Shown: in pieces, positions 4,363-52,081 of the stretch
Position numbering within the stretch: the first letter of the stretch is position 1
How the letters are laid out: every line of letters starts with the position of its first letter
Source: Okamejei kenojei
Taxonomy: Eukaryota
Length of the DNA stretch: 64,000 nt
Direction of reading: 5' to 3'
Assembly (NCBI GenBank): GCA_035221665.1
Contig: CM069154.1
Coordinates: 5,456,001 to 5,520,000 of the forward strand
The notes under the pieces: generated by a model
Databases searched by the model: none
The model's input: only the letters and a program-made list of their open reading frames with translations
Told to the model about the DNA's origin: nothing
Program-made: the position numbers and the translations under genes

Positions 4363-4685
4363 GGTCAAGGGGAGTAACTGAACCCGAGGAGGTGAGGGAG
4401 AGTTGGGGCAGTCGGTCACTGTGGAATGTCAGTATGATTCGAAATATAGAGATTACAACAAGCTGTGGAGTAAAGGTGATGATTACCAGTCATCTTCTAC
4501 CGTGGTTTCTACTGATGACCCACGACAAGGGAGAACATCGATAACTGATGACAAAACACAACAGATAGTTTCAGTAACCATCAACAACCTGGAGAAGAGT
4601 GATGAAGGACGCTACTGGTGTGTGATAGCAAAGGGAAAACATTCACACAATGAATCGACCTCCATCTCATTGATGGTTTCTGAAG
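4363..4685 (+). pseudogene. Gene 1, Ig V-set exon A (CD300/pIgR-like), with a 1-bp frameshift
   Basis: Acceptor cccacag|GG at 4363 and donor gaag|gtacgt at 4685. Translation ...GQSVTVECQY...KLWSKG...DEGRYWC...ISLMVSE. The exon is 323 bp versus 324 bp in its three sister exons (gtgagggagag vs gtgaggggagag near 4395), which splits it between ORFs 4353 and 4403. A homopolymer sequencing error is possible. Confidence 0.8.
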
Positions 4686-5604
4686 GTACGTTGACGATCT
4701 CTCCTCACGCTCCCAGATGTGAAAATTCCAGCCAGGGAATTTCGGCCTCAGTCCTGATGGTGACTCGGTGCCACATCCCCGGGGGTCGAGGTGGACGGGG
4801 GGGGGGGGGGGGGGGTGGTGGTGGTGGTGGTGCATACATCATTTACTGGGCCCACTGTCCCAGGAGCAGTATAGGGGGGGATGTCAGACACCAGCCCCAC
4901 GGAAGATCCCAGCTACCGCGGTTCTGCTGCTGAGGCTCATTTCCCGAAAGACGATCGCTCTGGGACCAGAACCTCCAGAACCAGGTGGGGGAAAACCGGC
5001 CCCTCACCCACCAGGGTGGAGAAAGGGAGAAAGGGGTCAAGGGGGAAGGGGAAGGCGCAGGTTAGTAGAAGATAGTTAAAATTAGAGAATTCAACGTTCA
5101 AACCGTTGGGTTGTAAACTACCTGAGCGTAATATGAGGTACGGTTCCTCCAACTTGCATGTGGCCTCACTCTGGCAATGGAGGAGGCCCAGGACAGACAG
5201 GTCAGTGTGGGAATGGGAAGGGACGTTGACAGGGTTAGCAACCGGGAGATCAAGAAGGGTCCCGACCCGAAAAGGACACCTGCCCTTTTACTCCAGAGAT
5301 GCTGCCTGATCTGCCATCAGTCTGAAGAAGGGTCTTGACCTGAAACGTCGCCTATTTCCTTCACTCCATAGATGCTTCCGCCCTCACCAGCTGAGTTTCT
5401 CCAGCATTTTTGTCTACCTGCCGAGTTACTCCAGCTCTTTGTGTCAATCTTTGGTGTAAACCAGCACCTGCAGTTCCTTGCTACACATGATCTATGCAAA
5501 ACCATGAACCTGTCTGAACAGCACAAATGACATGTTTTTTATTGTTAAACCTCAGCTTGTGTTGCTGCAGTGTGAGTGATCTTTCATCATTCATGTGCCA
5601 ACAG

Positions 5605-5928
5605 GGTCAGGGGGAATAACTGGACCCAAGGAGGTGAGGGGAGAGTTGGGGCAGTCGGTCACTGTGGAATGTCGGTATGATCAGGAATACAGTGACAACA
5701 GGAAGCTATGGAGTAAAGGTTATTATTACCGGTCATCTTCTACCGTGGTTTCTACTGATGACCCACGACAAGGGAGAACATCGATGACTGATAACAAAAC
5801 ACAACGGATACTTTCAGTAACCATCGACAACCTGGAGAAGAGTGATGAAGGACACTACTGGTGTGTGATAGTAAAGGGAATCTTTTCAAGCAATGAAAGG
5901 ACCTCCATCTCATTGAAGGTTTCTGAAG
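5605..5928 (+). CDS. Gene 1, Ig V-set exon B (CD300/pIgR/TREM-like)
   Basis: caacag|GG ... gaag|gtacgt, 324 bp, phase 1/1. GSGGITGPKEVRGELGQSVTVECRYDQEYSDNRKLWSKG...TIDNLEKSDEGHYWCVIVKG...ISLKVSE carries the B-strand Cys, the C-strand Trp and the DxGxYWC motif. Confidence 0.9.
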
Positions 5929-6679
5929 GTACGTTGACGATCTCTCCTCACTCTCCCAGATGTGAACATTCCAGCCTGGGAATTCCGGCCTCGGTCCTGA
6001 CGGTGATTCGGTGCCACATCCCCGGGGGTCGCGGTGAAGGGGGGGGAGCACATTTACTGGGGTCCATGAGCCCACTGTCCAAGGAGCAGTGTGTGTGTGT
6101 ATGTGTGTGTTTGGGGGGGGGGACCTCGTGAACGGGGACCGGCGGTTTCTGCTGCTGGCGGCTTATTTCCACAAAGAAGATCGCTCCGGGACCAGAACCT
6201 CTGCCGTCCCCTCACTGTGGCAGGAGGGGTGGAACCGCCCCCTCACCCTCTCCCCCTGCCCGTCACTGTCACACCCACCACACACACAACATCTGAAGAA
6301 GGGTCCCAACCCTATACATCGTCTGTTCATTCCTTCCACAGATGCTGCCAGACCTGCTGAGTTACTCCAGCACTTTGTGTTTTGCTCAAGATTCCAGCAC
6401 CTGCAATTCCTTGTGTCTCACAAACTTTGGTGATTCATGAGCTCAGTTTATTGTTGTCGTCTGTACCGACGCACAGGGAAAAGCTTTTACCGTGTTTCGA
6501 ATGAGGGCCAAGTCACTGGGTATTTTTAAGATTCATAGGTTCTCGATTAGTATGGGTGTCAAGCGATATGGGGAGAAGGGAAGAGAATGGGGTTGAGAGG
6601 GAGAGATAGATCAGCCATGATTGAATGGTGGAGTAGACAAAAATGGGCCAAATGGCCTCATTCTCCCCTATCACATGAA

Positions 6680-7055
6680 CTTCATTACAAGAGGATTTCA
6701 GTACAGGAGTGGAGAGGTTCTTCTGCAGTTGTATTGGGGTCTGGTAGGACCACATCTGGAATGTTGTGTCCAGTTTTGGTCTCCTAATTTGAGGAAGGAC
6801 ATCCTTGTGATTGAGGCAATGCAGCGTAGGTTCACGAGATTGATCCCTGGGATGACGGGACTGTTATATGAGGAAAGATTGAAAAGACTAGGTTCTGAAC
6901 TGGAGTTTAGGATGATGAGTGGGGATCTTATAGAAACATATAAAATTATAAAAGGACTGGACAAGCTCGATGAAGGAAAAATGTCCCCCAATGTTGGGTG
7001 ACTCCAGAACCAGGGGCCACAGTCTTAGAATAAAGGGGAGGCCATTTAAGACTGA
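6680..7055 (+). mobile_element. CR1 LINE 3' fragment, split by L1 and continuing at 10590-10855
   Basis: LECCVQFWSP...QRRFTRLIPGM...DLIETYKIIKG. The uninterrupted paralog is at about 30490-31120. Confidence 0.85.
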
Positions 7056-10000
7056 AGCAAGAGGTACGGCAATTATAATATTTAACCTTTTAAATTAAAG
7101 AAGTCTATATCTGATAAAGAGGGAAGATACGTTATAGTCACGGGAGAAATTTATAATACATCATTAACTATGATAAATATTTACGCACCTAATTTTGATA
7201 ACCCCCAATTTTTTAAGAAAATAGTAGATATAATTGCAGAGCATAATTATCAAAATATAATAATGGGGGGAGATTTCAATTGTGTTATAGACCCATATTT
7301 AGAAAAATCAATAAAGTAGGGAAGCGTCTTGTTAAAACTAATACCTGTGAATTCTTAAATACTTATATAAAAAATAATAACATAACTGATGTTTGGAGAA
7401 TAGCAAACCCAATTGGAAGGGAATATTCGTTTTACTCATCGGTTCATAAAACTTACTCACGAATTGACTATTTCTTATTGGATACAAAATTAATCCCGTA
7501 TACGACTAAACCATCATACCATAATAGTATTATTTCCGATCATTCACCACTGACTTTTATACTTAAAATCGAGGGAATGCCGTATATAATACCTTTTTGG
7601 AGATTCAACGCACAAATATTAAATAACCCACAGGGTTATGAGCATATAAAAAAAACAAACAAAAAAAAAATTTAGAGATAAATGAGACGCCGGGTATTTC
7701 TGTATCGCTATTATGGGAAACCTTTAAGGCATACATCCGCGGTGTTATAATCTCTTATCAAAGTTTTCAAAATAAAGAAAATAAAAGAGAACTTCAGAGG
7801 ATTGAACAGGAAATAAAATTATTAGATCTGGACAATGCAAATGACCCACCATAGATAAACATAATAAGATAACTTTATTGAAATATAAACTCAATAGAAT
7901 ATTATCGGCAAGAGTAATAAGATTATTCCAAATTACAAAACACACACACTTCGAATTTGAGATAAGCCACATAAATGATTAGCGAGGCAACTGAAGCAAC
8001 AAGAAAAGGAAAATACTATCACTAAAATTAAATCTGATAAGGGCGAGCTTCTAACACTACCAAAGGATATTAATAAAAGGTTTGCCCAATTTTATCATAA
8101 TTTATACACAACTAAAATAAATACAGATGATAGTAAAATTACAAATTTTTTAGATAATTGCAATCTCCCTAAATTGGATAGTTTAGAACAAGAGGAATTA
8201 GGAGCACGGATTACTAGTGAAGAAATAAAACAAACAATAAACTCATTGAAAAATGGGAAGACCCCAGGACCAGATGGTTTTAGCAATGAATTTTATAAAC
8301 AATTTCAGGAGTCAATTGTACCAAGATTATTCAACTTATACGCGCAGGCTTATACCGAAAATAAACTACCAGAAACTTTAGCTGAATCAACAATAACGCT
8401 TATACCAAAAAAAAGATAAAGACTTAGAGGAACCAGGTTCTTACAGAGCTATATCACTTCTAAACACGGATCAGAAAATTTTAGCAAAGATTCTAGCAAG
8501 AAGACTGAATAATTATATTAACAAATTGGTAAACCCGGATCAAACAGGATTTATACCTAAAAGACAATCACTTAATAACTCGAGAAGGCTTTTCAATATA
8601 ATGTACTCTCACAAAGAGCACATTGAAGATATTTCAGTCATTACATTGGATGCAGAGAAGGCATTTGATCAGGTAGAATGACAGTATTTATATAAGGTAC
8701 TCCAAAAATTGAACACGGGAGAGAATTTTATTAGATGGGTTAAATTGCTTTATGATAAACCTACGGCAAGAATATTAACTAATAATATGTTATCTCCAAA
8801 ATTGTATTTATCAAGGGGTAATAGGCAGGGATGTGCCTTATCACCATTGCTATTTGCCCTTATGATAGAACCGCTGGCTGAAAGGATTAGAAATCATCCA
8901 AATATTCACGGATATAATACTAAGGACTCAAAGAATAAAATTTAATTATATGCTGACGATATTCTTTTATATATTACTAATACACAAACGAGTATCCCCA
9001 CCTTATTAACACTAATCGAGGAATTTGGTTCTTTTTCAGGATATAGAATAAATTGGAATAAAAGCGAAATTATGTCTTTGAAACCACAGGATGCGAGACA
9101 CTTATTAAAATTTCCTTTCAAAATTGCAACAGAAAAATTCAAGTATTTGGGTATTCAAATTACGAGAAGACACAAATCATTATTTAGTGCTAATTTTATG
9201 CCACTATTAAATAAACTGAATGTTATGATTAAATTTTGGAAAACGCTACCGCTCTCATTGATAGGTAGAATTAACGCTATAAAAATTACTTTCTTACCAC
9301 AATTAATATATTTGTTTCAAGCGATCCCAATATATATTCCAAAATATTTTTTCAAAAAACTAGATTCTAATATCACTAATTTTATATGGGATTATAGAGC
9401 ACACAGAATTCAACGAAAGCATCTGTGTAAACCTAAAGAAGTTGGGGGGTTATCATTACCTAACTTTAAGTATTACTACTGGGCAGTGCATATAAAGAAC
9501 ATAATGTACTGGTTGGATAACTCCACTCACCAGTCGGAGTGGATAAGAATGGAGAAAGAGGAGTGTTTCCCCGTACGATATAGGAACGATCTTGTTCTCA
9601 CCGATAAAATTCACAAAAACTATTTTTATAATAGTATATTAAATAGAGAATTACCCTCAACAGAGGCACTAAGAGAAGATTGGGAACATGAACTAATGAT
9701 AAAGATTCCGAAAGATAAATGGGAAAAGTATCTGATGAACACATATAATTGTTCCATTAATGCAAGACATAATCTAATTCAATTTAAACTATTACATAGA
9801 CTATATTATTCAAAAACGAGGTTAAATAAATTCAACTCAAATGTTTCTCCTAGATGCGATAAATGTTTGTTTCAAAATGCCAATATATCACATTCATTTG
9901 TAGGATGTATAAAGTTGAATAAATTTGGAGCGATATATTTTGATATATTTACAAAGCTCTTCAAGTCAAGAATAGAACCAAATACGGAATGGATTATATT

Positions 10001-10589
10001 TGGAATAATAGTAGAAGATATCAAGTTAAACAAAGACCAAAAAGTATTCTTTAATTATGGGTTAATAATTGGAAAGAAATTGATACTTAAATTTTGGAAA
10101 AATACAGCTATACCAACTATTAAAATGTGGATTTGTAATATGACGGACATAGCTCACTTTGAAGAAATGAGACTCCGCCTAATAGATAAATATGACCAAT
10201 TCTTAAGGAGTTGGTCCCCTTTCATCGACTTTTTGGAATCATGTGATGCAGCAGTACCGTTAAGATTACTGATTTCAGCTCAGGTCGTGGGTAGAATTAC
10301 ATCTCCGAACAAAGATTTGAAAATTCTTTTTCTCCTATTTCTACTTTCTATGTTTTCTTTTCTTATATGCACACTTCAAGTTTTTCTATTTTCTACTATC
10401 TATTTTTCCTCTTTTTCTTCTCTCTATTTCTTGCCTTTTTTTAATTTCCTTTTCAAAAACATAAAACTAGAGGTTGTACATAGAATGTATTACGTTATGA
10501 CATAGTTGTCACCTAAAAGTAGGTGCCACTGTATTGTTTTTTACTGTATTAACTTCTAATAAAATAAACAAAACAAAAAAACAAAAAAA
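7056..10589 (+). mobile_element. L1/Tx1-clade LINE, 5'-truncated ORF2 (EN-RT-ZnF), degenerate; private to gene 1
   Basis: EN motifs NIYAPN, GDFN, SRIDY and SDH; RT motifs PGPDG, QGCALSP and YADD; polyA tail; TSD aagactg(a/t) at 7048 and 10590. Confidence 0.92.
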
Positions 10590-11586
10590 AAGACTGTGGT
10601 GAGAAAAAACATTTTCACCCAGAGAGTTGTGAATTTGTGGAATTCCCTGCCACAGAGGGCAGTGGAGGCCAAATCACTGGATGGATTTAAGAGAGAGTTA
10701 GATAGAGCTCTAGGGGCTAGTGGAATCAAAGGATATGGGGAGAAGGCAGGCACGGGTTATTGATTGTGGATGTTCAACCCAGATCACAGTGAATGGCGGT
10801 GCTGGCTCGAAGGGCCGAATGGCCTCTTCCTGCAACTATTTTCTATGTTCCTATAAATTATGAACGAAGAATCCTTATGAGATGACTGATATGGACTTTA
10901 AACTGAGCCGCACAAACTGTACAAGATGAGATACTCAACAGGTCGGGCAGCATCTGTGGAGAGAGAATGACAGTTAATGTTTCAGGTAGATACCTCCAAC
11001 CAAATTGCATTATTTCCAATTCAGTCCACGTAATGAAAATAGTCCATGGATCCTCCCGCTCCCAAGTTCTTCTCCAACGTAGAAGACATGTGCCTAACTC
11101 TAGCAGCAGGCAGATAACACAGCCTGTGGGACTCTGAAGGGCATGAAAGAAGTCTCTGAATGCTTGCGGCCATCATGTGGCATCTTAAAAATGGGTGAGC
11201 CTCCTGTCTAGACCAAGATGCTTGGTCCATCTATGGTGGCCTCAGAAGGATCTTTGTCCAAATGTATGGAGTGGGATTCAAACCACGAATATTCGACACA
11301 TGTGAAATTCCAGCTTGGGAATTCTCGGCCTCGGTCCTGACGGTGACTCGGTGCCACATCCCCGGGGTTCATGGGGGAGGGAGGGGGTGTTTGGTGGGAG
11401 GTGAGAAGGGGGTAGGGGGAATCCGCTGCATGGGGCCACACTGGTTTAGGATTTGAACCCAGGAATCTCTCCACACAGAGCAAGAGCACTCCCAACTGAA
11501 GCATCTCCCCCACATCACTGAAGTGGAACAGAACTTGCTTTCAGACATTTAATGTTCAAAAACTTCATTCACTTTATCTCCACAAG

Positions 11587-11728
11587 GGTCTCAAACAAAC
11601 CGCCCAGATATGGTCATCACCACCTCTACAACAATAAGCACAAGGGCTCTGACCACCCTGCCTCAAGATGCACCAACCACCGAGGCAGCAAGTTCCACTG
11701 AGTCTCCTGGTTCAATACTTTCAAACAG
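11587..11728 (+). CDS. Gene 1, Ser/Thr/Pro-rich mucin-like stalk exon
   Basis: ctttatctccacaag|GG ... aacag|gttggt, phase 1 in and phase 2 out. GSQTNRPDMVITTSTTISTRALTTLPQDAPTTEAASSTESPGSILSN. The paralog at 38112 keeps frame. Confidence 0.8.
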
Positions 11729-12639
11729 GTTGGTAACTCGAAGAGCCAACACAGCCTCAACTGAGAACAAATTAGTTAAGATCAGTTTCAACTCAGTTAA
11801 AAGATTCCTTGGCCCACCGAGTCCGCTCTGAGCAGCAATCACCCCCATACACCAGTTCTGTTCTACACACTAGGGGCAATTTACTACAAACCCCGCACGT
11901 CTTTGGAATGTGGGAGGAAATTGGAGAATCCAGAGTAAACTCTTGCAATCACAGGGAGAACATACAAACTATGTACTGACAGCACCGGTGGTCCGGTAGG
12001 ATCGTATCTTATTGTCGGTAAAATCAGTCCCAGTACTTTGAGAAAGCGTGGCTGATCACATTCCAGTCCATTGATAAATACTCCTTGGCCCTGACTAAAG
12101 TCCCTCTGTCCTTAGTACACCCAGTGGCCCTACCGTTGTGAATGTCTACCCTTATTTGATGCCAAAAAACAAATAACTTCACACTTATCACGGTTCAATA
12201 CCTGCTGGCATTGCTCTGCCCAACATACCAGTTGCTTCTCATCCCTCTGTGGTCTATGATTATTGTACTATCCAAAATGATACAATTTTGGTGTAATCTG
12301 TAAACTCGTTAATCATACTTCCAACATTAACATCTAAGGCCGGCAGATGGGACTAGTGTAGGTAAGGGCATCTTGGTCAGCGTGCGGAAATTGGGTCAAA
12401 GGACATGTTTTCGTGCTGTATGTCTGACCACCAACATGAACATCTAAGTTGTTAATGTATGTAGTCATGGAACACCTCCAAGGAATGGGTGCATGTTGCG
12501 ATATAAACATCTCACCAATGTCTACGCCACAACCTTGGATCACACTGAATGATTCCGTGTGCAATATGATGAAAAAATTCCCCAACGTTGATCTTTGATA
12601 ACTCTGTGTGGAAGTAATAATATTTCCTTGTATTTCCAG

Positions 12640-12747
12640 GGACATCGTGTTGAATGTTCGCCGTGTTTGGGGTGTGTTACGCTGGGTACTCTTTGGAGTT
12701 CTGCTTCTCTTCCTGGCTTCCATCAGCTGTGTGACAACTTTTAAAAG
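12640..12747 (+). CDS. Gene 1, transmembrane exon
   Basis: ttccttgtatttccag|G ... aaaag|gtaaaa, 108 bp, phase 2/2. RDIVLNVRRVWGVLRWVLFGVLLLFLASISCVTTFK is a hydrophobic helix containing an Arg. Confidence 0.85.
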
Positions 12748-12844
12748 GTAAAAGTTTGCAATCTCTTCACTCTAGTGTTCACATTAAATTAAATTGGAAA
12801 TGATGGGAGTTCACTTTAGAATTTAGAGATAAAGTGTGGACATA

Positions 12845-13612
12845 CAGTGCCCTCCATAATGTTTGGGACAAAGACCCATAATTTATTTATTTGCCTCTGT
12901 ATTCCACAATTTGAGATTGGTAATAGAAAAAATCACATGTGGTTAAAGTGCACATTGTCAGATTTTATTAAAGGGTATTTTTATACATTTTGGTTACACC
13001 ATGTAGAAATTACATCTGTGTTTTTACATAGTCCCCCCATTTCAGGGAACCATACATTTTGGGACACAAGGCTTCATAGGTGTTTGTAATTGCTCAGGTG
13101 TGTTTAATTGCCTCTTTAATGCAGGTATAAAAAGCTCTCAGCACCTAATCTTTCCTCCAGTCTTTCCATCACCTTTGGAAACTTTCATTGCTGTTTATCA
13201 ACATGAGGACCAAAGTTGTGCCAATGACTCAAATAAGCCATTATGAGACTGAGAAACAAGAATAAAACTGTTGGAAACATCATCCAAACATTAGGCTTTC
13301 CAAAATCAACTGTTTGGAACATCATTGAGAAGAAAGAGAGCACTGGTGAGCTTACTAATCGCAAAGGGACTGGCAAGCCAAGGAAGACCTCCAAAGCTGA
13401 TAACAGAAGACTTCTCTCTATAATAAAAAAAAAACCCAAACACCCTGTCCAACAGATAAGAAACACTCTTTAGGAGTCAGGTGGGGATTTGACAATAACC
13501 ACTGTCCGCAGAAGACTTCATGAACAGAAATACAGAGGATACACTGCAAGATGCAAACCACTGGTTAGCCACAAAAATAGGAAGGCCAGGTTACAGTTTG
13601 CAACAAAGTACT
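12845..13612 (+). mobile_element. Tc1 transposon, left half only
   Basis: ta|cagtgccctccataatgtttggg TIR and the paired/HTH region (KSTVWNII...GTGKPRKTS). Truncated. Confidence 0.85.
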
Positions 13613-16402: not shown

Positions 16403-19400
16403 CTTGTGAACAATGAGACTGAGATACTGCAGATATCAAGCAGAGCGAAGTACAGCCAGCGTCCCACCTTCCATGTCATGTAACTGAGAAAATGGGGAAA
16501 GATACAGAATCAGTGGGAGGAAACAGACTAGTTCATGTTGGAAACATTCATATCCTGATTGCTGTGAAATCTCTGCGTGGAGCAGGGTACAGCAACAGAG
16601 CCCAGGGAGTTCAGCTGGGAAATTCCACCGTCCAGGATCTCAACCCAAAACCTCACCTATCCATGTTCTTCAGAGATGCTGCCTGATTCGCTGAGTTACT
16701 CCAGCATTTTGCGTCTAGCGTTGATAAAGTTAGATAAGAAAAGATGGGAGATGTGACGAGTGGTATGTAAACACCAGCATGGACCAGCTTAGTTGATCTT
16801 TTCTGTGTCTTAAATCCTATGTGACCAGATGTAATTCTGCATAATCCAGGAATCTCATCACATTTAGGGTATTGTGTGCATTTCTGGTCACCATGTTACA
16901 GGAAAGATTTTGTCAAGCTGGAAAGGGTGCAGAGATGATTTATGAGGATGTTGCTGGAACTCGAGGGCCTGAGCTATAGGGAAAGTTTGAGCAAGATAGA
17001 TCATTATTCCTTGGAGAGGACGAGGGGTGATCTTATGGAGGTGTACAAAATCAAGAGATGAATCAACAAATACTTACTCATCTTTTTTTTTGTGACATTG
17101 GCACATTTGATAGAGCTGCTCTCTTAAGGCGCCAGAGACCTGGGTTCGATCCTGAACTCAGGGTGTTATCTGCGTGGATTTGTACATTCTCCCTATGACC
17201 GCGTTGGGTCTCCCTGCAGGTGCTCTGGTTTGCTCTCACATCCTAAAGGCATGCAGGTTTGGAGGTTAATTGGCATGTGTAAAATTGCCCTTCATGTGTA
17301 GGGAGTGAACAATAAAGTGGTACAACATAGAACTAGTGTTAACGGGGGGATCGAAGATAGACACAAAAAGCTGGAGTAACTCAGCGGGTCAGACAGCACC
17401 TCTGGAGAGAAGGACTAGATGACATTTGTCGTGTTGAGACACTTCTTCAGACTGATCTATGGCTGTCATGGACTTGTAGGGTGGAAGGGCCAGTTTCCGT
17501 GCTGTTTCTCTAAAACTAAAAAAACAAAAAAATAGCTAGAGTCCATTTGGCCCATTGAGTGTATGCTGGATCTTAGATCGTTCCTTTCAATTCTACTGCA
17601 CACTCTGATCTCAACATTGAATACTCTGATGCACTTAACACTAGCAAATGAAAGAGGAAATTCTCTTCCAATTAATTCTCATAAGGAGGTAGAGCCAATC
17701 ACAACAGCAGTAATAACATAATTGTACCATTCAGTGCAAGTGGATCGGGTTGTGTCATTTTGACTATCATTGGATCTTTTTTCTGTACTTGCAAATGGTG
17801 TACTCATCATTCGTTCATTCTTAGAAGTGCTACCAGTCTTTTTAGGTTCTGTTGGGTCAAGGAAATACAATTCAGCATCACCTGCTTTTCACTTGCAATC
17901 ATTAGTTCATAAGTCATAGGAGCAGAATTAGACCATTTGGCACATCAACTTCATGTTCATGCTCATAAGGGATAGAAGCAGAATTAGGCCATTCGGCCCA
18001 TCAAGTCTACTCTGCCATTCAATCATGGCTGATCTATCTCTCCCTCCTAACCCTATTCTCCTGCCTTCACCCCATAACCCCTGACACCCGTACTATCTCT
18101 GCCTTAAAATATCCATTGACTTGGTCTCCACAACCTTTTGTGCAATTAATTCCTCAAATTTACTACCCTCTTGCTTTAGAAATTCCTCCTAATTTTCTTC
18201 CTAAAGCAACGCTCTTTAATTCTGAAGCTATAAACTCTGGCCCTATATTATCCCACTAGTGGAAGCATCTTCTCCACACATATGTTAACCCACTCATTCC
18301 GAGGATCATTCTCATAATCCTCCTCCTTCTTTATTGAATTCCACAGATTCATCGCCCTCTGACTAAAGATTTATTGAGCAAGTCTTTGCAATAATACAAC
18401 AGCAACTTGCATTTCAACAGTGCCTTAAAGGTGATGGAAAAGTCTCAAGGTTCTTCACAACACCATTGTCAGGTGGAATTTGGCATGGAATCACATGCTG
18501 GTTAGAGATACAGCATGGAAACTGACCGTTCGGCCCACCGAGTCCACGCTGACCATCGATCACCCGTTCACACTAGTCCCACGTTACACCACTTTTGCAT
18601 GCACTCCCTACACATTGAGTGCAATTCGACATGAGCCACAATTCGACAAGTGCAATTAACCTACAAAGCCACACGTCTTTGGGATGTGGGAGGAAACCGG
18701 AGCACCCAGAGGAGACCCACGCGGTCACAGGCAGAACGAGCAAACTCCACACTGATAGCGCCGGAGGTCAGAATTAAACCTGGGTCTCTGGGGGTGGTTG
18801 CATTTCCAACTACAGCAAACCCAACCCCACAAATATCACTAAGAACAAGCCTCTCCATCACCAGTGTAGCAGTGTTACAACACAATGCTAGCAACTCACA
18901 ATGCTAGCAACATTGAATTTTCTAGTTTTAAGTAACTAACCCACAACAATCCTTTCCCCTAACCTCCGTTCCTTTCCACATATATATATATCCTTTCTTC
19001 CAGCTTCACATTTCATGCCTCTTCTCTCCATATCTCAGTCTTTTATCTTCTTTCCATCTCTGGCCATCGTCCACCCATCAGCCAGTAACCCTCTCTCCCT
19101 CACCTGTATCCACCTATCACTTGCCAGGCTTCATCCTTCCCCCACCTCTCTCCCAGCTTTCTCCCCCCTACTACAATCAGCCTGAACAAGGGTCCCAACC
19201 CAAAACGTCACCATGTTCTCTGGAGATGCTGCCTGGCCCATTGGCATTATATGCCTGTTTTTGAGAAATAGGAAGTTGTGAGGTTGATAAGAAGATTTGA
19301 ACACCAGTGTAAATATTTTGAAACCAAATCATTGATTCTACAGGTTAGGGTCGTTATGACTATGGAGGATGGGTTATCAGATCTGTGAGGTGTGGAGAAC

Positions 19401-21059
19401 TATGGTTAAGTCCAAATCCACCCACATGTCACAGTGCCAGGGTGAAGGGTGAGTGGGGCAGAGCAGGGCGGGGCACTGGCACCAGAGTTAAACTCATAGT
19501 CATACAGCACAGAAACAGGCCCTTCTTCCCAACTTGACCATGCTGACCCAACTGCCCACCTACACTAGTAGTAGTGTAGTTACTATATGTAGTGTACCTC
19601 AGCGGTATGAACATTGACTTCTCCAATTTCGGGTAGTCCTTGATTTCTCCCTTCTTCCCCTCCCCTTCCCAGCTCTCCCACAGCCTACTGTCTCCGCCTC
19701 TTCCTTTCTTCTTCCGCCCCGCCCACCCACCTCCACATCAGTCTGAAGAAGGGTCTCGACCAGAAACATCACCTATTCCTTCGCTCCATAGATGCTGCCT
19801 CACCCGCTGAGTTTCTCCAGCATTTTTGTCTACCTATGCTTTTGCGAGCATCTGCAGTTCTTTCTTAAACATAATGTAATGTGTTACATTTTTTATTATT
19901 AAATTTTATTGGCCAAACAATAAACATATGAAGCAACTTAGAAAAAATAGGAAGGAACAATTGTTTGTTTAATGTTATAAAGTGTGGATGTGGTGAGGCA
20001 AACACAACTGCTTGCTCTTTTTGTAAACAAGCTTTTGCAGTTAATTTTTTTCTATTTGATCTCCAGGCATGCTGTCTAACCCACTGAGTTACTCCAGCAC
20101 TTTGTGTCTTTTGTGTAAACCAGTATCTTTGGTTTCTTGTTTCTACATTTTGACGGGTCTGAAGAAGGACCCCGACCCGAAACATCACCTATCTATGTTA
20201 TAGATTCTATAGATGCACCGTATCCCACCATTGTGCCATCTATACCTCACGATGCCTCAAGAAAGCAGACAACATAATTAAGGACATTTTTCACCCCAGC
20301 CGTCCCCTCTTCTCCCCTCTCCCATCAAGGCAGAAGATATAAAAGCTTGAAATTTTACTCCACCTGTTTCACAAACTGCTTCTTCAAACCTATTGGAAAT
20401 GAACACGAGAGTGTGATGTAAGAGACTTTTAGATAAGTACATGGATATGCAGGGCTGGAGAGATATGGATTATGTGCAGGCAGATAAGGGTTTGTTCAGG
20501 GCAAGCACTATCAGAGGGGGGGCAACGAGTGCCATTTGGCATGGGCCTCATGCCTGTAGCCTCAAAGGGATCTTGATTTGGGGGCCTCTAAAATTGAGGG
20601 GCTTCTGCTTGAAATTCTGAAATTGAAATTGGCCTGGGCCTCAGTTCATCTATCAGATGGCCTGGTTCCTGGCATTATGTTCGGCACGGACATTGTGGGC
20701 CCGAGGGCTTGTTCCTGTCATGTTTAGTTTAGTTTAGAGATACAGCATGGAAACATGCCCTTTGCCCCACTAAGTTCGCTCTGACCAGCAATCACCCATA
20801 CACTAGTTCTATCGTGCACACTAGGTACAATTTACAGAAGCCAATTAACCTACAGAAGCCAATTAGCCTACTGTCTCCGCCTCTTCCTTTCTTCTTCCCG
20901 CCCCGCAGACCCACCTCCACATCAGTCTGAAGAAGGGTCTCGACCCGAAACATCACCTATTCCTTCGCTCCATAGGTGCTGCCTCACCCGCTGAGTTTCT
21001 CCAGCATTTTTGTCTACCATCGATTTTTCCAGCATCTGCATTTCTATCTTAAACCTAAA

Positions 21060-21372
21060 CTAGTTTAGTTTAGTTTAGAGATACAGCGTGGAAACTGGCC
21101 CTTCAGCCCACCGAGTTCGCACCGAACAGTGATCCCACCTCATTAACACTATCCTACACGCACTCGGGACTATTTACACTTATACCAAGCCAACTAACCA
21201 ACTAACCTATATGTTTTTGGAGTGTGGGAGGAAACTGAAGATCTTGGAGAAAACCCAGGCGGTCACGGGGAAAACGTACAAACTCCATACAGACAGCACC
21301 CGTAGTCGGGATCAAACCTGACAGTAAGCGCTGTAAAGCAGCAGCTCTACCACTGCGCCACCGTGCCGCCCT
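21060..21372 (-). mobile_element. tRNA-type SINE; representative of many copies (about 14545-14850, 17100-17520, 18500-18790, 21775-22045, 43889-44165, 45040-45450, 48640-48912, 49790-50090, 50490-50790)
   Basis: Recurrent sequence gtttagtttagagatacagc...ggatcgaacccgggtctctggcgctg...ctaccgctgcgccacc, with Pol III A/B-box-like head and (CTAAA)n tail. Confidence 0.75.
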
Positions 21373-22787: not shown

Positions 22788-22931
22788 AAGTGAGTCACCA
22801 ACTTAGTCTCGAACCACTGCAAAGTCGTTTCCTGAGTAAACGGACATTGACTGTTTGACTTCTGTTGTGAATGAGGAAGAGGACAACTCAAACGCAGTGC
22901 AGGGTCCAAACCGATCCAACGCAGCCAAGAC
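22788..22931 (+). promoter_or_regulatory. Candidate TATA-less proximal promoter of gene 2 (paralog about 51838-51983)
   Basis: TGAGTCA (AP-1) near 22791 and GAGGAA (PU.1/ETS-like) near 22873 lie just upstream of the leader ATG, and both are kept in copy 3. Motif-only evidence. Confidence 0.3.
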
Positions 22932-23028
22932 ATGGCAGTGGGACAGGGAGAATTCACCCACCAGAAACGGCCCAGATCCAGGGGAACAGTCGCTCTGTTG
23001 GTTCTTGTCGCTGTTGGTCTCACACCAG
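22932..23028 (+). CDS. Gene 2, signal-peptide (leader) exon
   Basis: gacATGG start, MAVGQGEFTHQKRPRSRGTVALLVLVAVGLTP-G|gtaaat. It has a basic n-region and hydrophobic h-region, and its phase-1 donor matches the Ig exons. Confidence 0.8.
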
Positions 23029-35900: not shown

Positions 35901-36093
35901 CATTTTCCTCCGTGGTTATTATTTCTGGAGAATCTGGAAATTCTATATCGGGTAAATCAGTGGCCAGCGGTATCGGAACCGGGTCCACTCTAGCTTCGCG
36001 TCCCGTATTTTTACTTTCACCCCGGGAGGCTCTCTTCACCCGCGAAACCTTCTTTCCCGATTTCTCCATTTTTGTTAAATTATCTGTGCTCAA
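32935..36093 (-). pseudogene. DIRS gag plus RT/RNase H/methyltransferase-like ORFs, broken by a few frameshifts
   Basis: KKDGGCRIILDL, IDLKDAY, LPNGLSSAP, YLDD, TDAS, INYLEL, DNKTAV, NVVAD, DLFAS and FPPF spread over ORFs 35359, 34211, 33667, 33267, 33044 and 32935. Confidence 0.9.
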
Positions 36094-38111
36094 TCAGCAC
36101 GCTAACGTCTAATTTTTACTTTTACTTTCGATGCTGGAGCCACCCAGCGTAACCTAAAAACCGCCCCGATGTAACTTCACTTACCTGCGGGCCGTTCCGA
36201 CCGCTGCGAGGAGCTGCTCCTTACCGCAGCTCCTCCTTCCGCCGTCAGCGTTGACGTCATGCCGTTGCCAGCGTGAGGCGGGCTCTTCACGTAGTCACTC
36301 ACGTGACTCCGAAGTAAAATTATCCTTAAAATTAAGAAACCTATCTTTGTTAATGCCAATAGTGAATAACCCTTCATTTAAACCATCTCTTATTGATAAA
36401 ACATATAATCAATGGGAAAGAATGGGAATTAAAAGGATCGGTGATATCTATGAAATGGGAAATCTGTTATCATTCCAACAATTCCAATTAAAATTTTAAC
36501 TGAAAAATAACCAATATTTTAAATATCTTCCGATCTGCGACTTCATGAAGAAATACATACAAAGATATCAAAACATAACTTTAGATCCACTGGAAGAAGC
36601 AATGAACATTAAGGCTGACTCACAGAAATTAATATCATATTTATATGATAGTATTTTAAATATAGATTTACCATCGACAGAAGCACTTAGAGAAGAGTGG
36701 GAATGAGAATTAATGATAAAAATTACGAAGGAAACATGGGAAACGTATTTGATATATATACATAAATGTTCCATTAATGTAAGATAAAATTGAATAAAAA
36801 TTTTACATAGATTATATTACTCAAAAACTAGATTGAATAAATTCTATCCAAATACTTCCCCCATTTGTGATAAATGTCTATCCCAAAATGCAACGATAAC
36901 ACACTTTTTTGTCTCCTGCAGAAAATGTTATAAATTCTGGAGTGATATTTTTTAAATATTTACAAAATTATTTAAGATAAAAATGGAACCTAATACTGCA
37001 ATTATTGTATTTGGAGTAATGGCAGATGGGAATGAATTGAACTCATCTCAAATTTTATTTTTTAATTATCGGTTAATAACGGCAAAAAAACGTATACTTA
37101 ACTTTTGGAAAAATACAGCCATACTAATGCTTAAAATGTGGATTTCAAACAAGTTGGACACTGCACATCTTGAGGAAACGCGATTCCTCCTAATAGATAA
37201 ATCAGACCAATTTTTAACGAGTTGGTCTCCATTTGTCCATTTTTTGGAAGCATATGGTGCAACAAAATGGTAGAAGCTAACTGTTTCAGGATTGGGAGAG
37301 GGATAGTCACGAATATAGATAATGATCTCCTTAATCTCTTACTTTCTACTCTTTCTCTTTCTTTTTTCTTTTTCTTTTTCAACTTTCTTCTTTCACACTT
37401 TTTTCTTTCTCACACACTATATATCACATGTTTCTATCTGTTATTATCTTTTCTCTCTTTTTCCTTTTCATTATTAAAAAGAATAACAATAAGAAGCTGT
37501 ACATAAAATGTAACGTCAATATATATTAGGCACCTTGGTGCCATATTCCTGTACTTACTTTTAATAAAATAAAATTTAAAAGAAAATAATTTTTTTTTAA
37601 AAACTACAAAAATGAGATGACTGATATGGACTTTACACTGAGCCGCACAAACTGCACAAGATGAAATACTCAACGGGTTGGGCAGCATCTGTGGAGAGAG
37701 AACGAGAGTTAATGTTTCATGTAGATACCTCCAACCTAATTGCATTATTTCCAATTCAGCCCACGTAATTAAAATAGTCCATGAATCCACCCGCTCCCAC
37801 TTTAAGTTCTTCTCCAACGTAGAAGACATGTGCCTAACTCTAGCAGCAGGAAGATAACACAGCCCGTGGGACTCTGAAGGGCATGAAAGACGTCTCTGAA
37901 TGCTTGCGACCATCCGGTAGCATCTTAATGGGTGAGCCTCCTGTCTAGATCAAGAGGCATGGTCCATCTATGGTGGCCTCAGAAGGATCTTTGCCCAAAT
38001 ATGTGTAGTGGGATTCAAACAAAGAATCTCCCCCACACACCACTAAAGTGGCACAGAACGTGCTTTCAGACATTTAATGTTCAAAAACGTCATTTTCTTT
38101 ATCTCCACAAG

Positions 38112-38268
38112 GGTCTCAAACAAGCCGCCCAGACATGGTCACCTCCAACTCTACAACAATAAGCACAAGGGCTTCCACCACAACCACTCTCACCACCCTG
38201 ACTCAAGATGCACCAACCACCAAGAAAGCAAGTTCCATTGAGTCTCCTGGTTCAACACCTCCAAACAG
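38112..38268 (+). CDS. Gene 2, mucin-like stalk exon
   Basis: atctccacaag|GG ... aacag|gttagt. GSQTSRPDMVTSNSTTISTRASTTTTLTTLTQDAPTTKKASSIESPGSTPPN, with an in-frame 15-bp indel relative to gene 1. Confidence 0.8.
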
Positions 38269-39192
38269 GTTAGTAACTTGAAGAGCCAACTCAGCCTCAC
38301 CTGAGAACAAATTAGTTAAGTTCAATTCAGCTCAATGTAAAGATACAGTGTGGAAATGGACCCTTTGGCCCACTGAGTCCACTCTAAGCAGCGATCACCC
38401 CATACACCAGTTCTGTTCTACACACTAGGGACAATTTACTACAAACCCGTACGTCTTTGGAATGTGAGAGGAAATTGGGGAATCCAGAGTAAACTCTTGC
38501 GATCACAGCGAGAACGTACAAACTATGTACTGACAGCACTGGTGGTCCGGTAGGATCGTATCCTATTGTCGGTAAAATCAGTCCCAGTACTTTGAGAAAG
38601 CGTGGCTGATCACATTCCAGTCCATTGATAAATATTCCTTGGCCCTGACTAAAGTCCCTCTGTCCTTAGTACACCCAGTGGCCCTACCGTTGTCAATGTC
38701 TACCCTTATTTGTTGCCAAAAACAAATAACTTCACACTTATCACGGTTCAATACCTGCTGGCATTACTCTGCCCAACATACCAGTTACTTCTTATCCCTC
38801 TGTGGTTTATGATTAGCGTACTATGCAAAATGATACAATTTTGGTGTAATCTGTAAACTCGTTAATCATACTTCCAACATTAACATCTAAGGCCGGCAGA
38901 TGGGACTAGTGTAGATAAGGGCATCTTGGTCGGCGTGGGGTAATTGGGTCAAAGGACATGTTTTCGTGCTGTATGTCTGACCACCAACAAGAACATCTAA
39001 GTTGTTAATGTATGTAGTTATGGAACACCTCCAAGGAATGGGTGCATGTTGCGATATAAACATCTCACCAATGTCTACGCCACAACCTTGGATCACACTG
39101 AATGATTCCATGTGCAATATGATGAAAAAAAATGCCAGCGTTGATCTTTGATAACTCTGTGTGGAAGTAATAATATTTCCGTGGATTTCCAG

Positions 39193-39300
39193 GGAAATCA
39201 TGCCGAATGTTTGCTGTGTTTGGGGTGTGTTACGCTGGGTACTCTTTGGAATTCTGCTTCTCTTCCCGGTTTCCATCTGCTGTGTGACAACTTTTAAAAG
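39193..39300 (+). CDS. Gene 2, transmembrane exon
   Basis: gatttccag|G ... aaaag|gtaaaa, 108 bp. REIMPNVCCVWGVLRWVLFGILLLFPVSICCVTTFK. Confidence 0.85.
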
Positions 39301-39894
39301 GTAAAAGTTTGCAATCTCTTCACTCTGGTGTTCACATTAAATTCAATTGGAAATGATGGGAATTTACTTTAGAATTGTAGAGATAAAGTGTGGACATACA
39401 GTGCCCTCCATAATGTTTATGACAAAGACCCTTCATTTATTTATTTGGCTCTGTATTCCACAATTTGAGATTTGTAATAGAAAAAATGACATGTGGTTAA
39501 AGTGCACGTTGTCAGATTTTATTAAAGGGTATTTTTATACATTTGGGTTTCACCATGTAGAAATGACAGCTGTGTTTATACAGAGTCCCCCCATTTCAGG
39601 CCACCATAATGTTTGGGACGCATGGCTTCACAGGTTTTTGTAATTGCTCAGGTGTGTTTAATTGCCTCCTTAATGCAGGTAATAGAAATCTCTCAGCACC
39701 TAGTCTTTCCTGCAATCTTTCCATCACCTTTGTAAACATTTATTGCTGTTAATCAACATGAGGACCAAAGTTGTGCCAATGAAAGTCAAAGAAGCCATTT
39801 ATGAGGCTGAGAAACAAGACAAAACTGTTAGAAACATCAGCCAAAGATGAGGCTATCCGAAATCAACTGTTTGAAACATCATTAAGAAGAAAGA

Positions 39895-44231: not shown

Positions 44232-44475
44232 GAAAAAAACAGCCAAGACCTTGGAGATGGGGTCGGCAGTGGTGGAGGGAGGAGAGGAACGCGAGTGGGC
44301 TGCTGGAGACCCTGCAGCAGCTGGTGGATCGGGTGCCGCTGGAGGTCCCACAGTGATCGGGGACGAGCGCGCGGATCGGACACGGCCTGCAGCGGCACGG
44401 AGCGGCGGTGGAGGCACCGACAACATCGCCAGACCAGGCCGACGCCTGCAACTCCCACCAGTGCCGTCTCCATGA
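44232..44475 (+). CDS. Gene 2, candidate terminal cytoplasmic exon
   Basis: gttttaattgttattcaag|G is phase-2 compatible and reads RKKTAKTLEMGSAVVEGG...LQLPPVPSP* (same frame as ORF 44251). It would put a basic cluster right after the TM. AATAAA lies near 44693. It could instead be a GC-rich repeat fragment. Confidence 0.35.
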
Positions 44476-47400: not shown

Positions 47401-50400
47401 GTAGGACATAGTGGCAGGGTGAGGGGTGACCTCTGGAACTCAGCTCCAAACTTTTTATTTATCAGAGTAGCTGCCTCAAAAAGGCACCAATGTTTGCAGA
47501 CTAGAACTCAAAGCTGGCTCTCCAGAATGTGAACTTTTAACTTTATTACCTATTGGATTGCCGTGTAAAACGCTGCACATTGAATAATGATGAAAGTAAT
47601 CCAACATAAAATGAAGATGGCTGAATTTTTGTCATAAGGTCATAGGTGATAGGTGTCGAATTAAGCCAATCGGCCCTTCATGTCTACTCCGCCATTCAAT
47701 CATGGCTGATCCATCTCTCCCTCCTAACCCAATTTTTCGGCCTCTCCCCAGAACCTCTGACACCTGTACTAATTAAGTCCATCTATCTCTGCCTTAAAAA
47801 TATCCACAGACATTCTCTGGATACTTTCAAGAGAGAGCTAGATAGGGCTCTTAAAGATAGCGGAGTCAGGGGATCTGGGGAGAAGGCAGGAACGGGGTAC
47901 TGATTGGGGATGATCAGCCATGATCACATTGAATGACGGTGCTGGCTCAAAGGGCCGAATGGCCTACTCCTGCACCTGTTGTCTAATCTCTATTGAATTC
48001 CCCAGATTCATCACCCTCTGACTAAAGGTTTTTTGAGCAATTATTTGCAATAATGCAACAATAACTTGCATTTCAACAGTGCCTTATCTGTATCTCCACA
48101 CAGAGGCTCCTTGTTCGTCAATGGGGAGGGTGTGCTGCCTGTCCTGTACCACTGTAGGACATAGTGGCAGGGTGAGGGGGGTGACCTCTGGAACTCAGCT
48201 CCAAACTTTTTATTTATCGGAGTCACTACCTCAAAAAGGCACCAATGTTTGCAGACACTTCTGTACCATCCTGACATTCACCCAAAAGACAGCAGTACAT
48301 AGATTAGAACTGAAAGCTGGCTCTCCAGAATGTGAACGTTTAACTTTATTACCAATTAAATTGCCGTGTAAAAAGGTCATAGATGATAGGTGTAGAATTA
48401 GGCCATTCGGCCCATCAAGTCCACTCCGGGGCGAATGGCCTACTATTGCACCTATTGTCTATTCTCTTATTGAATTCCCCAGATTCATCACCCTCTGACT
48501 AAAGATTTATTGAGCAATTATTTGCAATAATACAACGCATCTTGCATTTCAACAGTGCCTTAAAGGTGATGGAAAAGTCTCAAGGTTCTTCACAGCACCA
48601 TTGTCAGTTAGAATTTGGCATGGAATCACATGCTGGTTAGAGATAAAGCATGGAAACAGACCGTTCGGCCCACCGAGTCCACGCTGACCATCGATCACCC
48701 GTTCACACTAGTCCCACATTACACCACTTTTGCATGCACTCCCTACACATTGAGTGCAATTCGACAAGAGGGGCCAATTAACCTACAGAGCCACACGTCT
48801 TTGGGATGTGGGAGGAAGCCGGAGCACCCAGAGGAGACCCACACGGTCACAGGGAGAACGTGCAAACTCCACACTGATAGCGCCGGAAGTCAGAATCGAA
48901 CCTGGGTCTCTGGGGGTGGTTGCAGTTCCACCTACATCAAACCCAACCCCACAAAATATCACCCAGAACAAGCCTCTCCATCACCAGTGTAGCAGTGTGA
49001 CAACACAATGCTAGCAACTCACTTCAAGATAGGTTGAGAAACAGGAAGACACAAGGAAGTACAGATGCAGTAATATATGATAGTCCGCTCGGGTAGATTG
49101 CAACCCAATGGCGGGGAACATTGAATTTTCTAGTTTTAAGTAACTAACCCACAACAATCCTTTCCCCTAACCTCCGTCCCTTTCCACATATATATATCCT
49201 TTCTTCCAGCTTCACATTTCATGCCTTTTACTCTCCATATCTCACAGCCTTTTATCTTCTTTCCATCTCTGGCATCATCCACCCATCAGCCAATAACCCT
49301 TCTCTCCCTCACCTGCATCCAACTATCACTTGCCAGGCTTCATCCTTCCCCCACCTCTCTCCCAGCTTTCCCCCCCTACTACAATCAGCCTGAACAAGGG
49401 TCCCAACCCAAAACGTCACCTATCCATGTTCTCTGCAGATACTACCTGGCCCATTGAGTTACTCCATATGTCTGTTTTTGAGAAATAGGAAGTTATGAAG
49501 TTGATAAGAAGATTTGAACACCAGTGTAAATATTTTGAAACCAAATCATTGGCTCTAGGGGTTAGGGTTGTTATGACTATGCAGGGTGGGTTATCAGATC
49601 TGTGAGGTGTCTAGAACTATGGTCAAGTCCAAATCCACCCACATGTCACAGTGCCAGGGTGAAGGGTGAGTGGGGCAGAGCAGGGCGGGGCACTGGCACC
49701 AGAGTTAAACTCATAGTCATACAGCACAGAAACAGGCCCTTCTTCCCAACTTGACCATGCTGACCAAATTGCTTACCTACACTAGTTTAGTAGACAGATA
49801 AAGCGTGGAAACTGGCCCTTCGGCCCACATAGTCCGCAACGAACAGCAATCCCCACGCATTAACACTACCCTGCACGCACTAGGGACTATTTACACTTAT
49901 ACCAAGCCAACTAACCTACCAGCTTATACGATTTTGGAGTGTGCGAGGAAACTGAAGACCTTGGAGAAAACCCAGGCGGTCACGGGGAGAACGTACAAAC
50001 TCCATACAGACAGCACCCGTAGTCGGGATCAAACCCGACTGTAAACGCAGTAAGGCAGCAGCTCTACCACTGCGCCACAGTGCCGCCCTAGTCCACTTGT
50101 CCCACTTGCCCGCGTTTGACCCATCTCCTCTTTGTTCTGCCATATATTGGTAAACATCCAGTTTTCAACCTCAGTCAGGAAGTAGTGTCTCGGCCGGAAT
50201 ACAAACATGCACTTTTTGCCTCCACAGATGCTGCTTTGACCCGTTGAGTTTTTCAGGTGTTCTGCTATTGTTCCAGATTCTAGTATATGCAATCTCCTTT
50301 GTCTTCTCCCTCACACAACCCTAATCCTACCTCAACAATGTTATCTCACAGAAGCTGATGGGTACATGGAAGGAGCACGTCCAGAGGAGGTAGTGGGGAC

Positions 50401-51983
50401 GGGTACTATTAACAACATTTAAAAGCATTAGGACATGGTACGTGGATAGGAAAGGTTTGTAGGGACAGGGGTCAAATGCAGGCCTGGTTTTTATGGTGGC
50501 GCAGCTGTAGAGTTGCTGCCTTACATTGCATAACAGCGGCAGATACCCGGGTTCAATCCCGGCTTCAGGTGCTTGTCTGTACATAGTCTGTACTTTCTCC
50601 CAGTGACCTGCGTGGGTTTTCTCCGAGAACTTCAGTTTCCTCCCACACTCCAAAGATGTACAGGTTTGTAGGTTAATTGGGTTGGTGTAAATGTAAACAT
50701 TTGTGTTGCTGTGCGGGGATCACTGGATGGTGCGGACACGGTGGGCCAGAGGGCCTGTTTCCGCACTGTATCTCTAAACGAAACTAAACGAAAGAGGGAC
50801 TAGCGTACATGGGACATCTTCATCGGCATTGGCAAGCTGTTTCCGTGCTGTATCACTCGATGATTTTATGAATCACATCCTCAAACTAAGCTTTACCCGG
50901 TCTCCCATGCTCAAATATTTGAATTGTCCTTCAAGGAGATTATCTGGTGACATGTTGACTTTTCTGATCGCATTTGACAATAGACAATAGACAATAGGTG
51001 TAGGGATAGGCCATTCAGCCCTTCGAGCCAGCATCACCATTCAATGTGATCATGGCAGATCATCCACAATTACCCCATTCCTGCCTTATCCCCATATCCC
51101 CTGACTCTGCTATCTTTTTTTTATTAAAATGTCTTTATTAGAAGTAATGTACATTACAATGATATAAGCCAAAAATAAACATAATACATTTCCTGTACCA
51201 CTTCTTATTTTATATTTTAAGAAGAAGAAGAATAAGAAGAATAGAGAGAGTTAGATAGGATAGTAAGTGCGTGAGAGAGTCATCTGGAAGAGCCCGCTAT
51301 CTTTAAGAGCCTATCTAGCTCTCTCTTGAAAGTATCCAGAGAACCGACTTCCACCGCTTTCTGAGGCAGAGAATTCCACAGACTAACAACTCTCTGTGAG
51401 AAAAATGTTTCTCATTTCCGTTCCGTTGGTGCCTATTTCTCCGGGTAACGTTTCAAAACATGAGAAGCTGAGGAAGGCTGGGACAAATTAGTGATACGCA
51501 TTTTGAGGTGGGCAAATAGTTCACAAGTTCACACGTTCCAGGAGTAGAATATGGCCATTCGGCCCATCGAGTCTCCTCCGCCATTCAAGCATGGCTGATC
51601 TCTGCCTCCTAATCCCATACATGTTCAGACACAGTGTGCCCGCATTTGAGGGAGGGGGTTGAGGTGGTGGGCAAGGGAATGTTTGCGGTGGTGGACAGAG
51701 TGCTGCAAAGCGGGCAAACGTCACCAGGATGAAGCAGAGCTTTGAGGAGATACTCCAATCCAGGCAACAGGAGAGCATTGCAGCCCCCTGATAGGTGCAT
51801 TGTCCGTGGTGAGGAGGCTGGGGGATAGGGCGTGGCAAGTGAGTCACCAACTTAGTCTCGAACCACTGCAAAGTCATTTCTGAGCAAACGGGAATTGACT
51901 GTTTGACTTCTGTTGTGAATGAGGAAAGGAGGACAACTCTCAAAGCAGTGCAGGGTCCAAACCGATCCAACGCGAGCCAAGAC

Positions 51984-52081
51984 ATGGCGGTGGGACAGGG
52001 AGAATTCACCCACCAGAAACGGCCCAGATCCAGGGGAACAGTCGCTCTGTTGGTTCTTGTCGCTGTTGGTCTTCACATCAG
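51984..52081 (+). CDS. Gene 3, signal-peptide exon (indels near donor, possibly sequence error)
   Basis: MAVGQGEFTHQKRPRSRGTVALLVLVAVGL, near-identical to 22932-23028. There are extra T's at ggtcttcacatcaggttttaaatc versus ggtctcacaccaggtaaatc. Confidence 0.65.

Follow-up and report, generated by a model that had tools for sequence, protein, structure and literature searches.

A basic transmembrane residue, a tyrosine-free tail, twin receptors bearing an immunoreceptor tyrosine-based inhibitory motif (ITIM) and a multigene cluster form the standard pattern of adaptor-coupled receptors, as known from the CD300, TREM, KIR, LILR and SIRP families. The activating CD300 members mostly carry a transmembrane lysine or glutamate, in contrast to the outer arginine (Arg) of the skate gene treated here. 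The pIgR of teleosts has two V domains. As for cartilaginous fish, the work of Cannon et al. in 2006 (Immunogenetics) reportedly found a positively charged transmembrane residue in MDIR1 of the clearnose skate and is said to have termed the MDIR domains I- or C2-set. One report presents the MDIRs as multigene families of activating and inhibitory receptors that occur in skate and zebrafish and whose domains resemble those of CD300, TREM, FCAR and pIgR (PMC3031540). The locus analyzed here is a stretch of 64,000 nucleotides (nt) of the skate Okamejei kenojei (assembly GCA_035221665.1, contig CM069154.1, positions 5,456,001 to 5,520,000 of the forward strand), hereafter the window. It holds three head-to-tail units of a receptor gene, called genes 1, 2 and 3.

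Only gene 2 is complete and intact as the sequence stands. It probably represents an intact, activating-type CD300/pIgR-like paired receptor, whose Arg would dock an adaptor with an immunoreceptor tyrosine-based activation motif, or ITAM, whereas copies 1 and 3 are probably decaying. Gene 2 is read as activating-type because the standard pattern of the CD300, TREM, KIR, LILR and SIRP families is present.

Gene 2 and its predicted product

The coding sequence of gene 2 is distributed over six exons (Table 1). The first five are bordered by AG acceptors and GT donors, and from ATG 22932 to position 39300 they contain 336 codons without a stop. An earlier note, made from the sequence alone, had described these five exons with the same phases and the same open frame. 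Both descriptions hold, but the note overlooked the sixth exon, which occurs only once in the window. With this exon, the frame closes at 1254 nt, equivalent to 417 amino acids (aa), with zero internal stops. If the donor of the transmembrane exon stays unused, an in-frame TAA follows (the last codon ends at 39301). Joined exons were used solely for counting stops and length; every search and fold was run with single exons.

The predicted product, 417 aa long, is a type I membrane protein with a signal peptide, two CD300f-like V domains, a stalk of the O-glycosylation type, a transmembrane helix with an outer Arg and a tyrosine-free tail. The stretch G-E-F-T-H-Q-K, located ahead of the hydrophobic signal core (22932-22985), is conserved from sharks to skates. 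Such conservation is uncommon in the n-region of signal peptides, and some shark models begin at a later methionine.

The hydrophobic run of the transmembrane exon comprises 29 residues and ends before K-R-K-K. The Arg occupies position 4 of the best 21-residue hydrophobic segment, and the best 19-residue core begins just past it. The segment WGVLRWVLFG, with the Arg near its outer end as the earlier note had stated, is read in both window copies of this exon. A wider pattern, W-x3-R-W-x2-F-x2-L-x5-S, is invariant in 11 sequences, the conserved positions being W(-4), R, W(+1), F(+4), L(+7) and S(+13). These sequences are both window copies and nine relatives, which are skates (Leucoraja, Rhinoraja), stingrays (Hemitrygon, Hypanus), mantas (two Mobula species), a numbfish (Narcine) and two sharks (Carcharodon, Scyliorhinus); a second catshark protein also has the pattern. 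The Arg and the conserved helix face would dock an acidic transmembrane residue of an adaptor dimer with ITAM or YxxM motifs. The cell would be activated once the V domains bind their ligand, and paralogues with an ITIM and almost the same ectodomains would provide the counterweight. By analogy with CD300 and the teleost PIGRL/DICP families, phospholipids would be a reasonable guess for the ligand.

The 82-aa tail of gene 2 is conserved only in its first 20 residues, which are 85% identical to the Leucoraja relative described below. The tail start R-K-K-T-A-K-T-L-E-M is common to both proteins, and a stretch resembling the subsequent SAVVE also occurs in Narcine. Compared with the pIgRs fetched, the tail showed no likeness; its only match was the Leucoraja relative.

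V domains and relatives of the family

The Pfam V-set domain was recognized in all four V exons of the window with E-values of 1e-12 to 1e-16. In a search of the PDB, the best sequence matches of both V-A and V-B were CD300f and pIgR (E 1e-15 to 1e-17). For V-A of gene 2, mouse CD300f/CLM-1 led with 67 bits (E 1.2e-17), followed by pIgR D5 as a single domain (51 bits), other CD300 members (42-48 bits), NKp44 (37 bits), the best antibody V domain (35 bits) and TREM2 (30 bits). For V-B, chains of pIgR and CD300 were the only ones past 1e-6. Gene 2 V-A was also modeled with AlphaFold (AF2) from a nine-row alignment, with a mean pLDDT (predicted local distance difference test) of 91. Submitted to Foldseek, this model returned CD300f in each of the top 10 places (TM-score ~0.90, 36% identity); pIgR D1, CD300a, teleost pIgR, TREM2 and TREM1 came next, in that order. 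Judged by sequence and modeled fold, the V domains belong to the CD300/pIgR group, as the earlier note had proposed, and are closest to CD300f. By the same sequence scores, TREM is no closer to them than antibody V domains are.

One deviation concerns a second intradomain disulfide, customary in this group, of which one cysteine comes after the conserved tryptophan and the other about 7 residues later. All four V exons read W-S-K-G...S, as opposed to W-C-[KR]-G...C in stingray and shark relatives. Other skates also have serine at these sites; therefore, the disulfide was lost within the family, and its absence gives no ground for exclusion.

A tree of 74 V domains was built, which includes tetrapod pIgR D1 and, having no CD300 or TREM sequence, is silent on CD300 versus pIgR. 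The elasmobranch V domains form one clade in it (99/98), inside which the skates form another (100/97) that includes the V domains of the window. Tetrapod pIgR D1 falls outside the clade holding the elasmobranch family. Gene 2 V-A joins the first-domain type of Amblyraja and Leucoraja (100/96), and the V-B exons join the membrane-proximal domain type of the same two genera. Since both types are found in Amblyraja and Leucoraja, they are not private to the locus.

Relatives are numerous. A HMMER scan of 1.84 billion representative proteins yielded 630 matches at an E-value of 1e-10 or better, the best being elasmobranch RefSeq models named 'polymeric immunoglobulin receptor-like' or 'CMRF35-like molecule'. 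The nearest proteins come from Leucoraja, Amblyraja and Rhinoraja; no protein of Raja eglanteria was among the returns of the homologue searches. XP_055510911.1 of Leucoraja erinacea, with 468 aa and three V domains, is the nearest public protein. Its leader, stalk, transmembrane segment and tail start span the same junctions as in gene 2. By tblastn, it is 76-83% identical to the window in the transmembrane exon (leader and stalk in Table 1), and identity in the V-A exon is 71% overall. Gene 2 and an Amblyraja radiata protein have identical leaders.

Paralogues of the ITIM type with an uncharged transmembrane segment are found in Leucoraja, Rhinoraja, Amblyraja, Hemitrygon, Pristis and Scyliorhinus. 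Their ITIM-like motifs are V-I-Y-T-T-V and V-V-Y-A-T-I in skates and V-E-Y-S-T-L in the catshark. In Hemitrygon, the ectodomains of the activating and inhibitory types are nearly identical (branch lengths 0.02-0.05). Gene 2 thus has a basic transmembrane residue and a tail with neither ITIM nor ITAM, and its relatives have ITIM paralogues with similar ectodomains. At the level of such signatures (outer Arg, tyrosine-free tail, ITIM paralogues in relatives), the activating type suggested by the earlier note is supported. The family and its module of Arg and transmembrane segment are common to sharks and rays, and from these sequences it is taken to be an old elasmobranch paired-receptor family. 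RefSeq already lists it in no fewer than a dozen elasmobranchs, and the window holds an ordinary further member.

Tandem units, copies with frame defects and mobile elements

Self-comparison of the window resolved three head-to-tail units of ~24-29 kb each. Identity amounts to 96.6% between 1-4827 and 23795-28584, 94.7% between 4848-7055 and 28659-30861, and 91% between 11499-13337 and 38022-39894. The region 18327-23659, ahead of the gene 2 leader, matches 48462-52686 at 90-93%, and gene 2 intron 1 (23653-27377) matches 53631-62130 at 83-94%; across all matches, units 2 and 3 are 84-94% identical, for the most part 90-94%. Judged by these sequences, the local tandem duplication is recent. The unequal spacing of the units is due to mobile elements, such as an L1-like insert in unit 1 at about 7280-10505.

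Table 1 Exons of the receptor gene copies and a candidate polyadenylation signal in the window (phases given as start/end of the exon)
Feature	Positions	Strand	Remarks
Gene 1 V-A exon	4363-4685	+	323 nt, frameshifted; V-set match 3' of the shift
Gene 1 V-B exon	5605-5928	+	324 nt, open, phase 1/1
Gene 1 Ser/Thr-rich stalk exon	11587-11728	+	15 nt shorter than that of gene 2, in frame
Gene 1 transmembrane exon with Arg	12640-12747	+	same VWGVLRWVLFG core as gene 2
Gene 2 leader exon	22932-23028	+	97 nt, from ATG, phase 0/1; 91% identical to the XP_055510911.1 leader
Gene 2 V-A exon	28119-28442	+	324 nt, phase 1/1; Pfam V-set 7.9e-16
Gene 2 V-B exon	29423-29746	+	324 nt, phase 1/1; V-set domain
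Gene 2 Ser/Thr/Pro-rich stalk exon	38112-38268	+	157 nt, phase 1/2; 71% identical to the Leucoraja stalk
Gene 2 transmembrane exon	39193-39300	+	108 nt, phase 2/2; core VWGVLRWVLFG
Gene 2 last exon	44232-44475	+	82-aa tyrosine-free cytoplasmic tail; stop at 44473-44475; tblastn with the Leucoraja relative
Candidate poly(A) signal AATAAA	44693-44698	+	~220 nt past the gene 2 stop; consensus match only
Gene 3 leader exon	51984-52081	+	98 nt; sole gene 3 exon in the window

The copies on either side of gene 2 show frame defects. In the V-A exon of gene 1, one G is gone from a GGGG run at about 4419 (column 57 of the alignment of V-A copies), and this 1-bp deletion leads to six stops in the V frame. 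Since the window starts within intron 1 of gene 1, it does not include the leader of that gene, and no counterpart of a tail exon was found for gene 1 in the window, either by a pattern search with three mismatches allowed or by sensitive blastn. The gene 3 leader has an extra T before the donor, at about 52073; it consequently ends in phase 2, out of step with the phase-1 V exons. Both defects lie in or beside short homopolymers and are therefore possible assembly errors. As the sequences stand, genes 1 and 3 have the look of copies in decay, such as birth-and-death evolution would leave. The three repeats described by the earlier note can thus be retained as duplication units, not as working genes, gene 1 being frameshifted and gene 3 present in the window with its leader alone. 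With frame defects in two of the three copies, an expanding family is doubtful. Similarly, the description of the cluster as young and lineage-specific fits the local tandem copies and not the family or its Arg-bearing transmembrane module, which sharks and rays share. Inhibitory-type transmembrane or ITIM exons were not detected in the window by tblastn with four skate C-termini.

Genes 1 and 2 differ mainly by amino-acid-changing substitutions. In V-A, all three scored changes alter the amino acid, and so does one more in the first codon, which is split. In V-B, 10.5 amino-acid-changing differences stand against 1.5 silent ones; in the transmembrane exon, the figures are 9.5 and 0.5, corresponding to a rate of amino-acid-changing substitutions (dN) of 0.13 and of silent substitutions (dS) of 0.02. 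None of the differences in the latter exon touches the invariant core; RR to CC is among them. In gene 1, 3 of 32 transmembrane residues (DIVLN to VTT) are changed relative to the Leucoraja relative (V/I, L/P, A/V). Positive selection was considered, given a dN/dS of ~2 in the V exons, and rejected: the changes are few, and the Fisher test was not significant. The divergence would be explained equally well by diversifying selection and by a relaxation of constraint on gene 1 as a dying copy. The gene 2 transmembrane exon carries three extra cysteines compared to gene 1 and Leucoraja, two before the helix (RR to CC) and one near its inner end (S to C). They could form interchain disulfides or serve as palmitoylation sites.

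Several other features of the window were recorded. A block 190-340 bp 5' of the leaders of genes 2 and 3 (22591-22746 and 51636-51788, + strand) appears as the coding C-terminus of a Rhinoraja longicauda gene model, with 77% (gene 2) and 53% (gene 3) aa identity. This C-terminus is probably a read-through error of the model over a conserved upstream region. A DIRS-like retroelement occupies 31943-36093 (- strand) in gene 2 intron 3 and is missing from unit 1. Its long open reading frames (ORFs) include one for a tyrosine recombinase (331 aa), pieces of a reverse transcriptase and a gag-like ORF. Gene 2 intron 1 contains an intact reverse-transcriptase ORF of 516 aa at 26249-27799 (+ strand), which, oddly, also matches ALKBH8_N of Pfam (E 5e-15); in unit 1, the corresponding copy (2496-4051) is fragmented. 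Between V-A and V-B, the intron harbors a repeat (28880-29350) that reaches a depth of 1e5 to 1e7 in the contigs of all four sequencing runs searched and is a very abundant interspersed repeat of skates. About 90 nt 3' of each V-A exon lies a poly-G/GGN tract (4770-4835; 28525-28625), at which the run contigs seem to be cut. An assembly gap of 500 N is located at 62156-62655 in gene 3 intron 1.

Alternative readings and comparison with known receptors

Several points weigh against the reading of gene 2 as an intact, activating-type receptor. No joint of V-A and V-B was found at 28050-29800 in the four sequencing runs, all of them contigs of related species and probably DNA. These runs hold small shares of the window, and their depth is dominated by the repeat between V-A and V-B. 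At the V-B acceptor, two run contigs break at 29420, and a third carries intron sequence. According to a 2014 survey of shark data, FcRgamma is absent from sharks, as is a PIGR homologue (PMC4016189). The gene 2 tail is 82 aa long, compared to 24 aa in the Leucoraja relative, and its first 20 residues alone are conserved. Furthermore, the dN/dS above 1 between copies comes from few changes and is not significant, and the 1-bp defects of genes 1 and 3, read from the sequence, could be assembly errors. A more radical reading treats all window copies, gene 2 included, as unexpressed relics of a birth-and-death cluster whose working genes lie elsewhere in the cluster. The frame defects in two of three copies and the lack of a tail exon in gene 1 would agree with it, as would the strong change of the gene 2 transmembrane exon relative to gene 1 and Leucoraja (RR to CC, dN 0.13 versus dS 0.02), a tail reaching ~60 aa beyond the Leucoraja stop, and the absence of RNA support in the four runs, which are probably DNA. 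Nevertheless, gene 2 keeps a frame of 1254 nt, six exons and intact splice sites, and the core of its transmembrane segment is unchanged, so that a relic is considered unlikely.

It is also conceivable that the protein is made and its Arg recruits no ITAM adaptor, the receptor signaling or being sorted through its own tail with the start LEM-x-SAVVE, or acting as a decoy or shed form. The conservation of the tail start between skates, the similar SAVVE stretch in Narcine and the reported absence of FcRgamma in the old survey (PMC4016189) are compatible with this, and the in-frame stop after the transmembrane exon would give a nearly tail-less form where the donor is unused. However, the adaptor-coupled pattern is made up of a basic residue that is invariant within a conserved helix face, a tyrosine-free tail and ITIM partners, and the transmembrane motif is kept in both sharks and rays; a receptor independent of adaptors is rather improbable. 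The names given by RefSeq ('polymeric immunoglobulin receptor-like'), the presence of pIgR D5 among the best PDB sequence matches and the two V domains of teleost pIgR would be expected if gene 2 were the pIgR of cartilaginous fish, transporting polymeric IgM. This identity is nonetheless highly improbable, as the gene is multi-copy with a charged transmembrane segment and ITIM paralogues, its tail is unlike pIgR tails, its domains group apart from tetrapod pIgR D1, and CD300f is the best match for both single-domain sequence and fold. For the same reasons of clade and tail, the relevance to the origin of pIgR that the earlier note saw in the cluster appears weak.

With gene 2 taken as an adaptor-coupled receptor, the partner of its Arg has to be considered. 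A pairing with FcRgamma is suggested by the outer position of the Arg, which is a resemblance only. The many pIgR-like RefSeq models imply that the 2014 survey was incomplete for PIGR-like genes, and perhaps for FcRgamma too; no literature on shark adaptors newer than this survey was found (PMC4016189). Alternatively, the helix face kept throughout sharks and rays might mark a dedicated adaptor other than FcRgamma, which could be a chain resembling CD3zeta or DAP or one that is as yet undescribed. This idea would fit if cartilaginous fish do lack FcRgamma, as the old survey has it, and is put forward as a long shot. If it were true, the motif would provide a handle on the wiring of ITAM signaling at the base of the jawed vertebrates. 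In any case, the transmembrane motif is a simple search key for activating members and their adaptor. The window itself changes little: with it, a widely annotated family gains one intact gene and two copies that are probably in decay. CD300/pIgR-type V receptors are abundant in cartilaginous fish, contrary to the 2014 survey, in which none of the PIGR-like kind were detected (PMC4016189).

Among FcRgamma-coupled receptors, gene 2 resembles FcalphaRI, GPVI, OSCAR, LILRA and NKp46 in having an outer Arg beside a tyrosine-free tail. The domains of these receptors are of the C2 type of the leukocyte receptor complex; they are non-relatives, and the likeness would be one of mechanism only. The MDIRs are likened to the skate genes by description only, and the domains of the window are clearly V-set, as opposed to the I- or C2-set reportedly assigned to MDIRs. 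With pIgR, gene 2 shares tandem V domains of the same broad type. In contrast to this transport receptor, it is multi-copy, has a charged transmembrane segment and a tail without likeness to pIgR, and its domains belong to a separate clade. A single gene, an uncharged transmembrane segment and a long tail with sorting signals, which characterize pIgR proper, are not found in the skate gene.

The similarity to mammalian CD300 (CMRF35-like) receptors, best to CD300f/CLM-1, extends from V sequence (E 1e-17) to fold (TM-score 0.90, 36% identity). Like the skate family, mammalian CD300 is a multigene cluster with activating members (charged transmembrane segment, short tail) and inhibitory ITIM members. 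The skate genes differ in having two or more V domains instead of one and in the loss of the second disulfide (Ser...Ser). Closest of all are the elasmobranch RefSeq models (XP_055510911.1; XP_038675621.1 of Scyliorhinus canicula). The number of V domains varies within this group, with two in gene 2, three in the Leucoraja relative and four to five in Rhinoraja and Narcine. Gene 2 departs from the models by its longer tail and by the changes RR to CC and S to C in the transmembrane exon, and has in common with them the leader, V type, stalk, Arg-bearing transmembrane exon and tail start.

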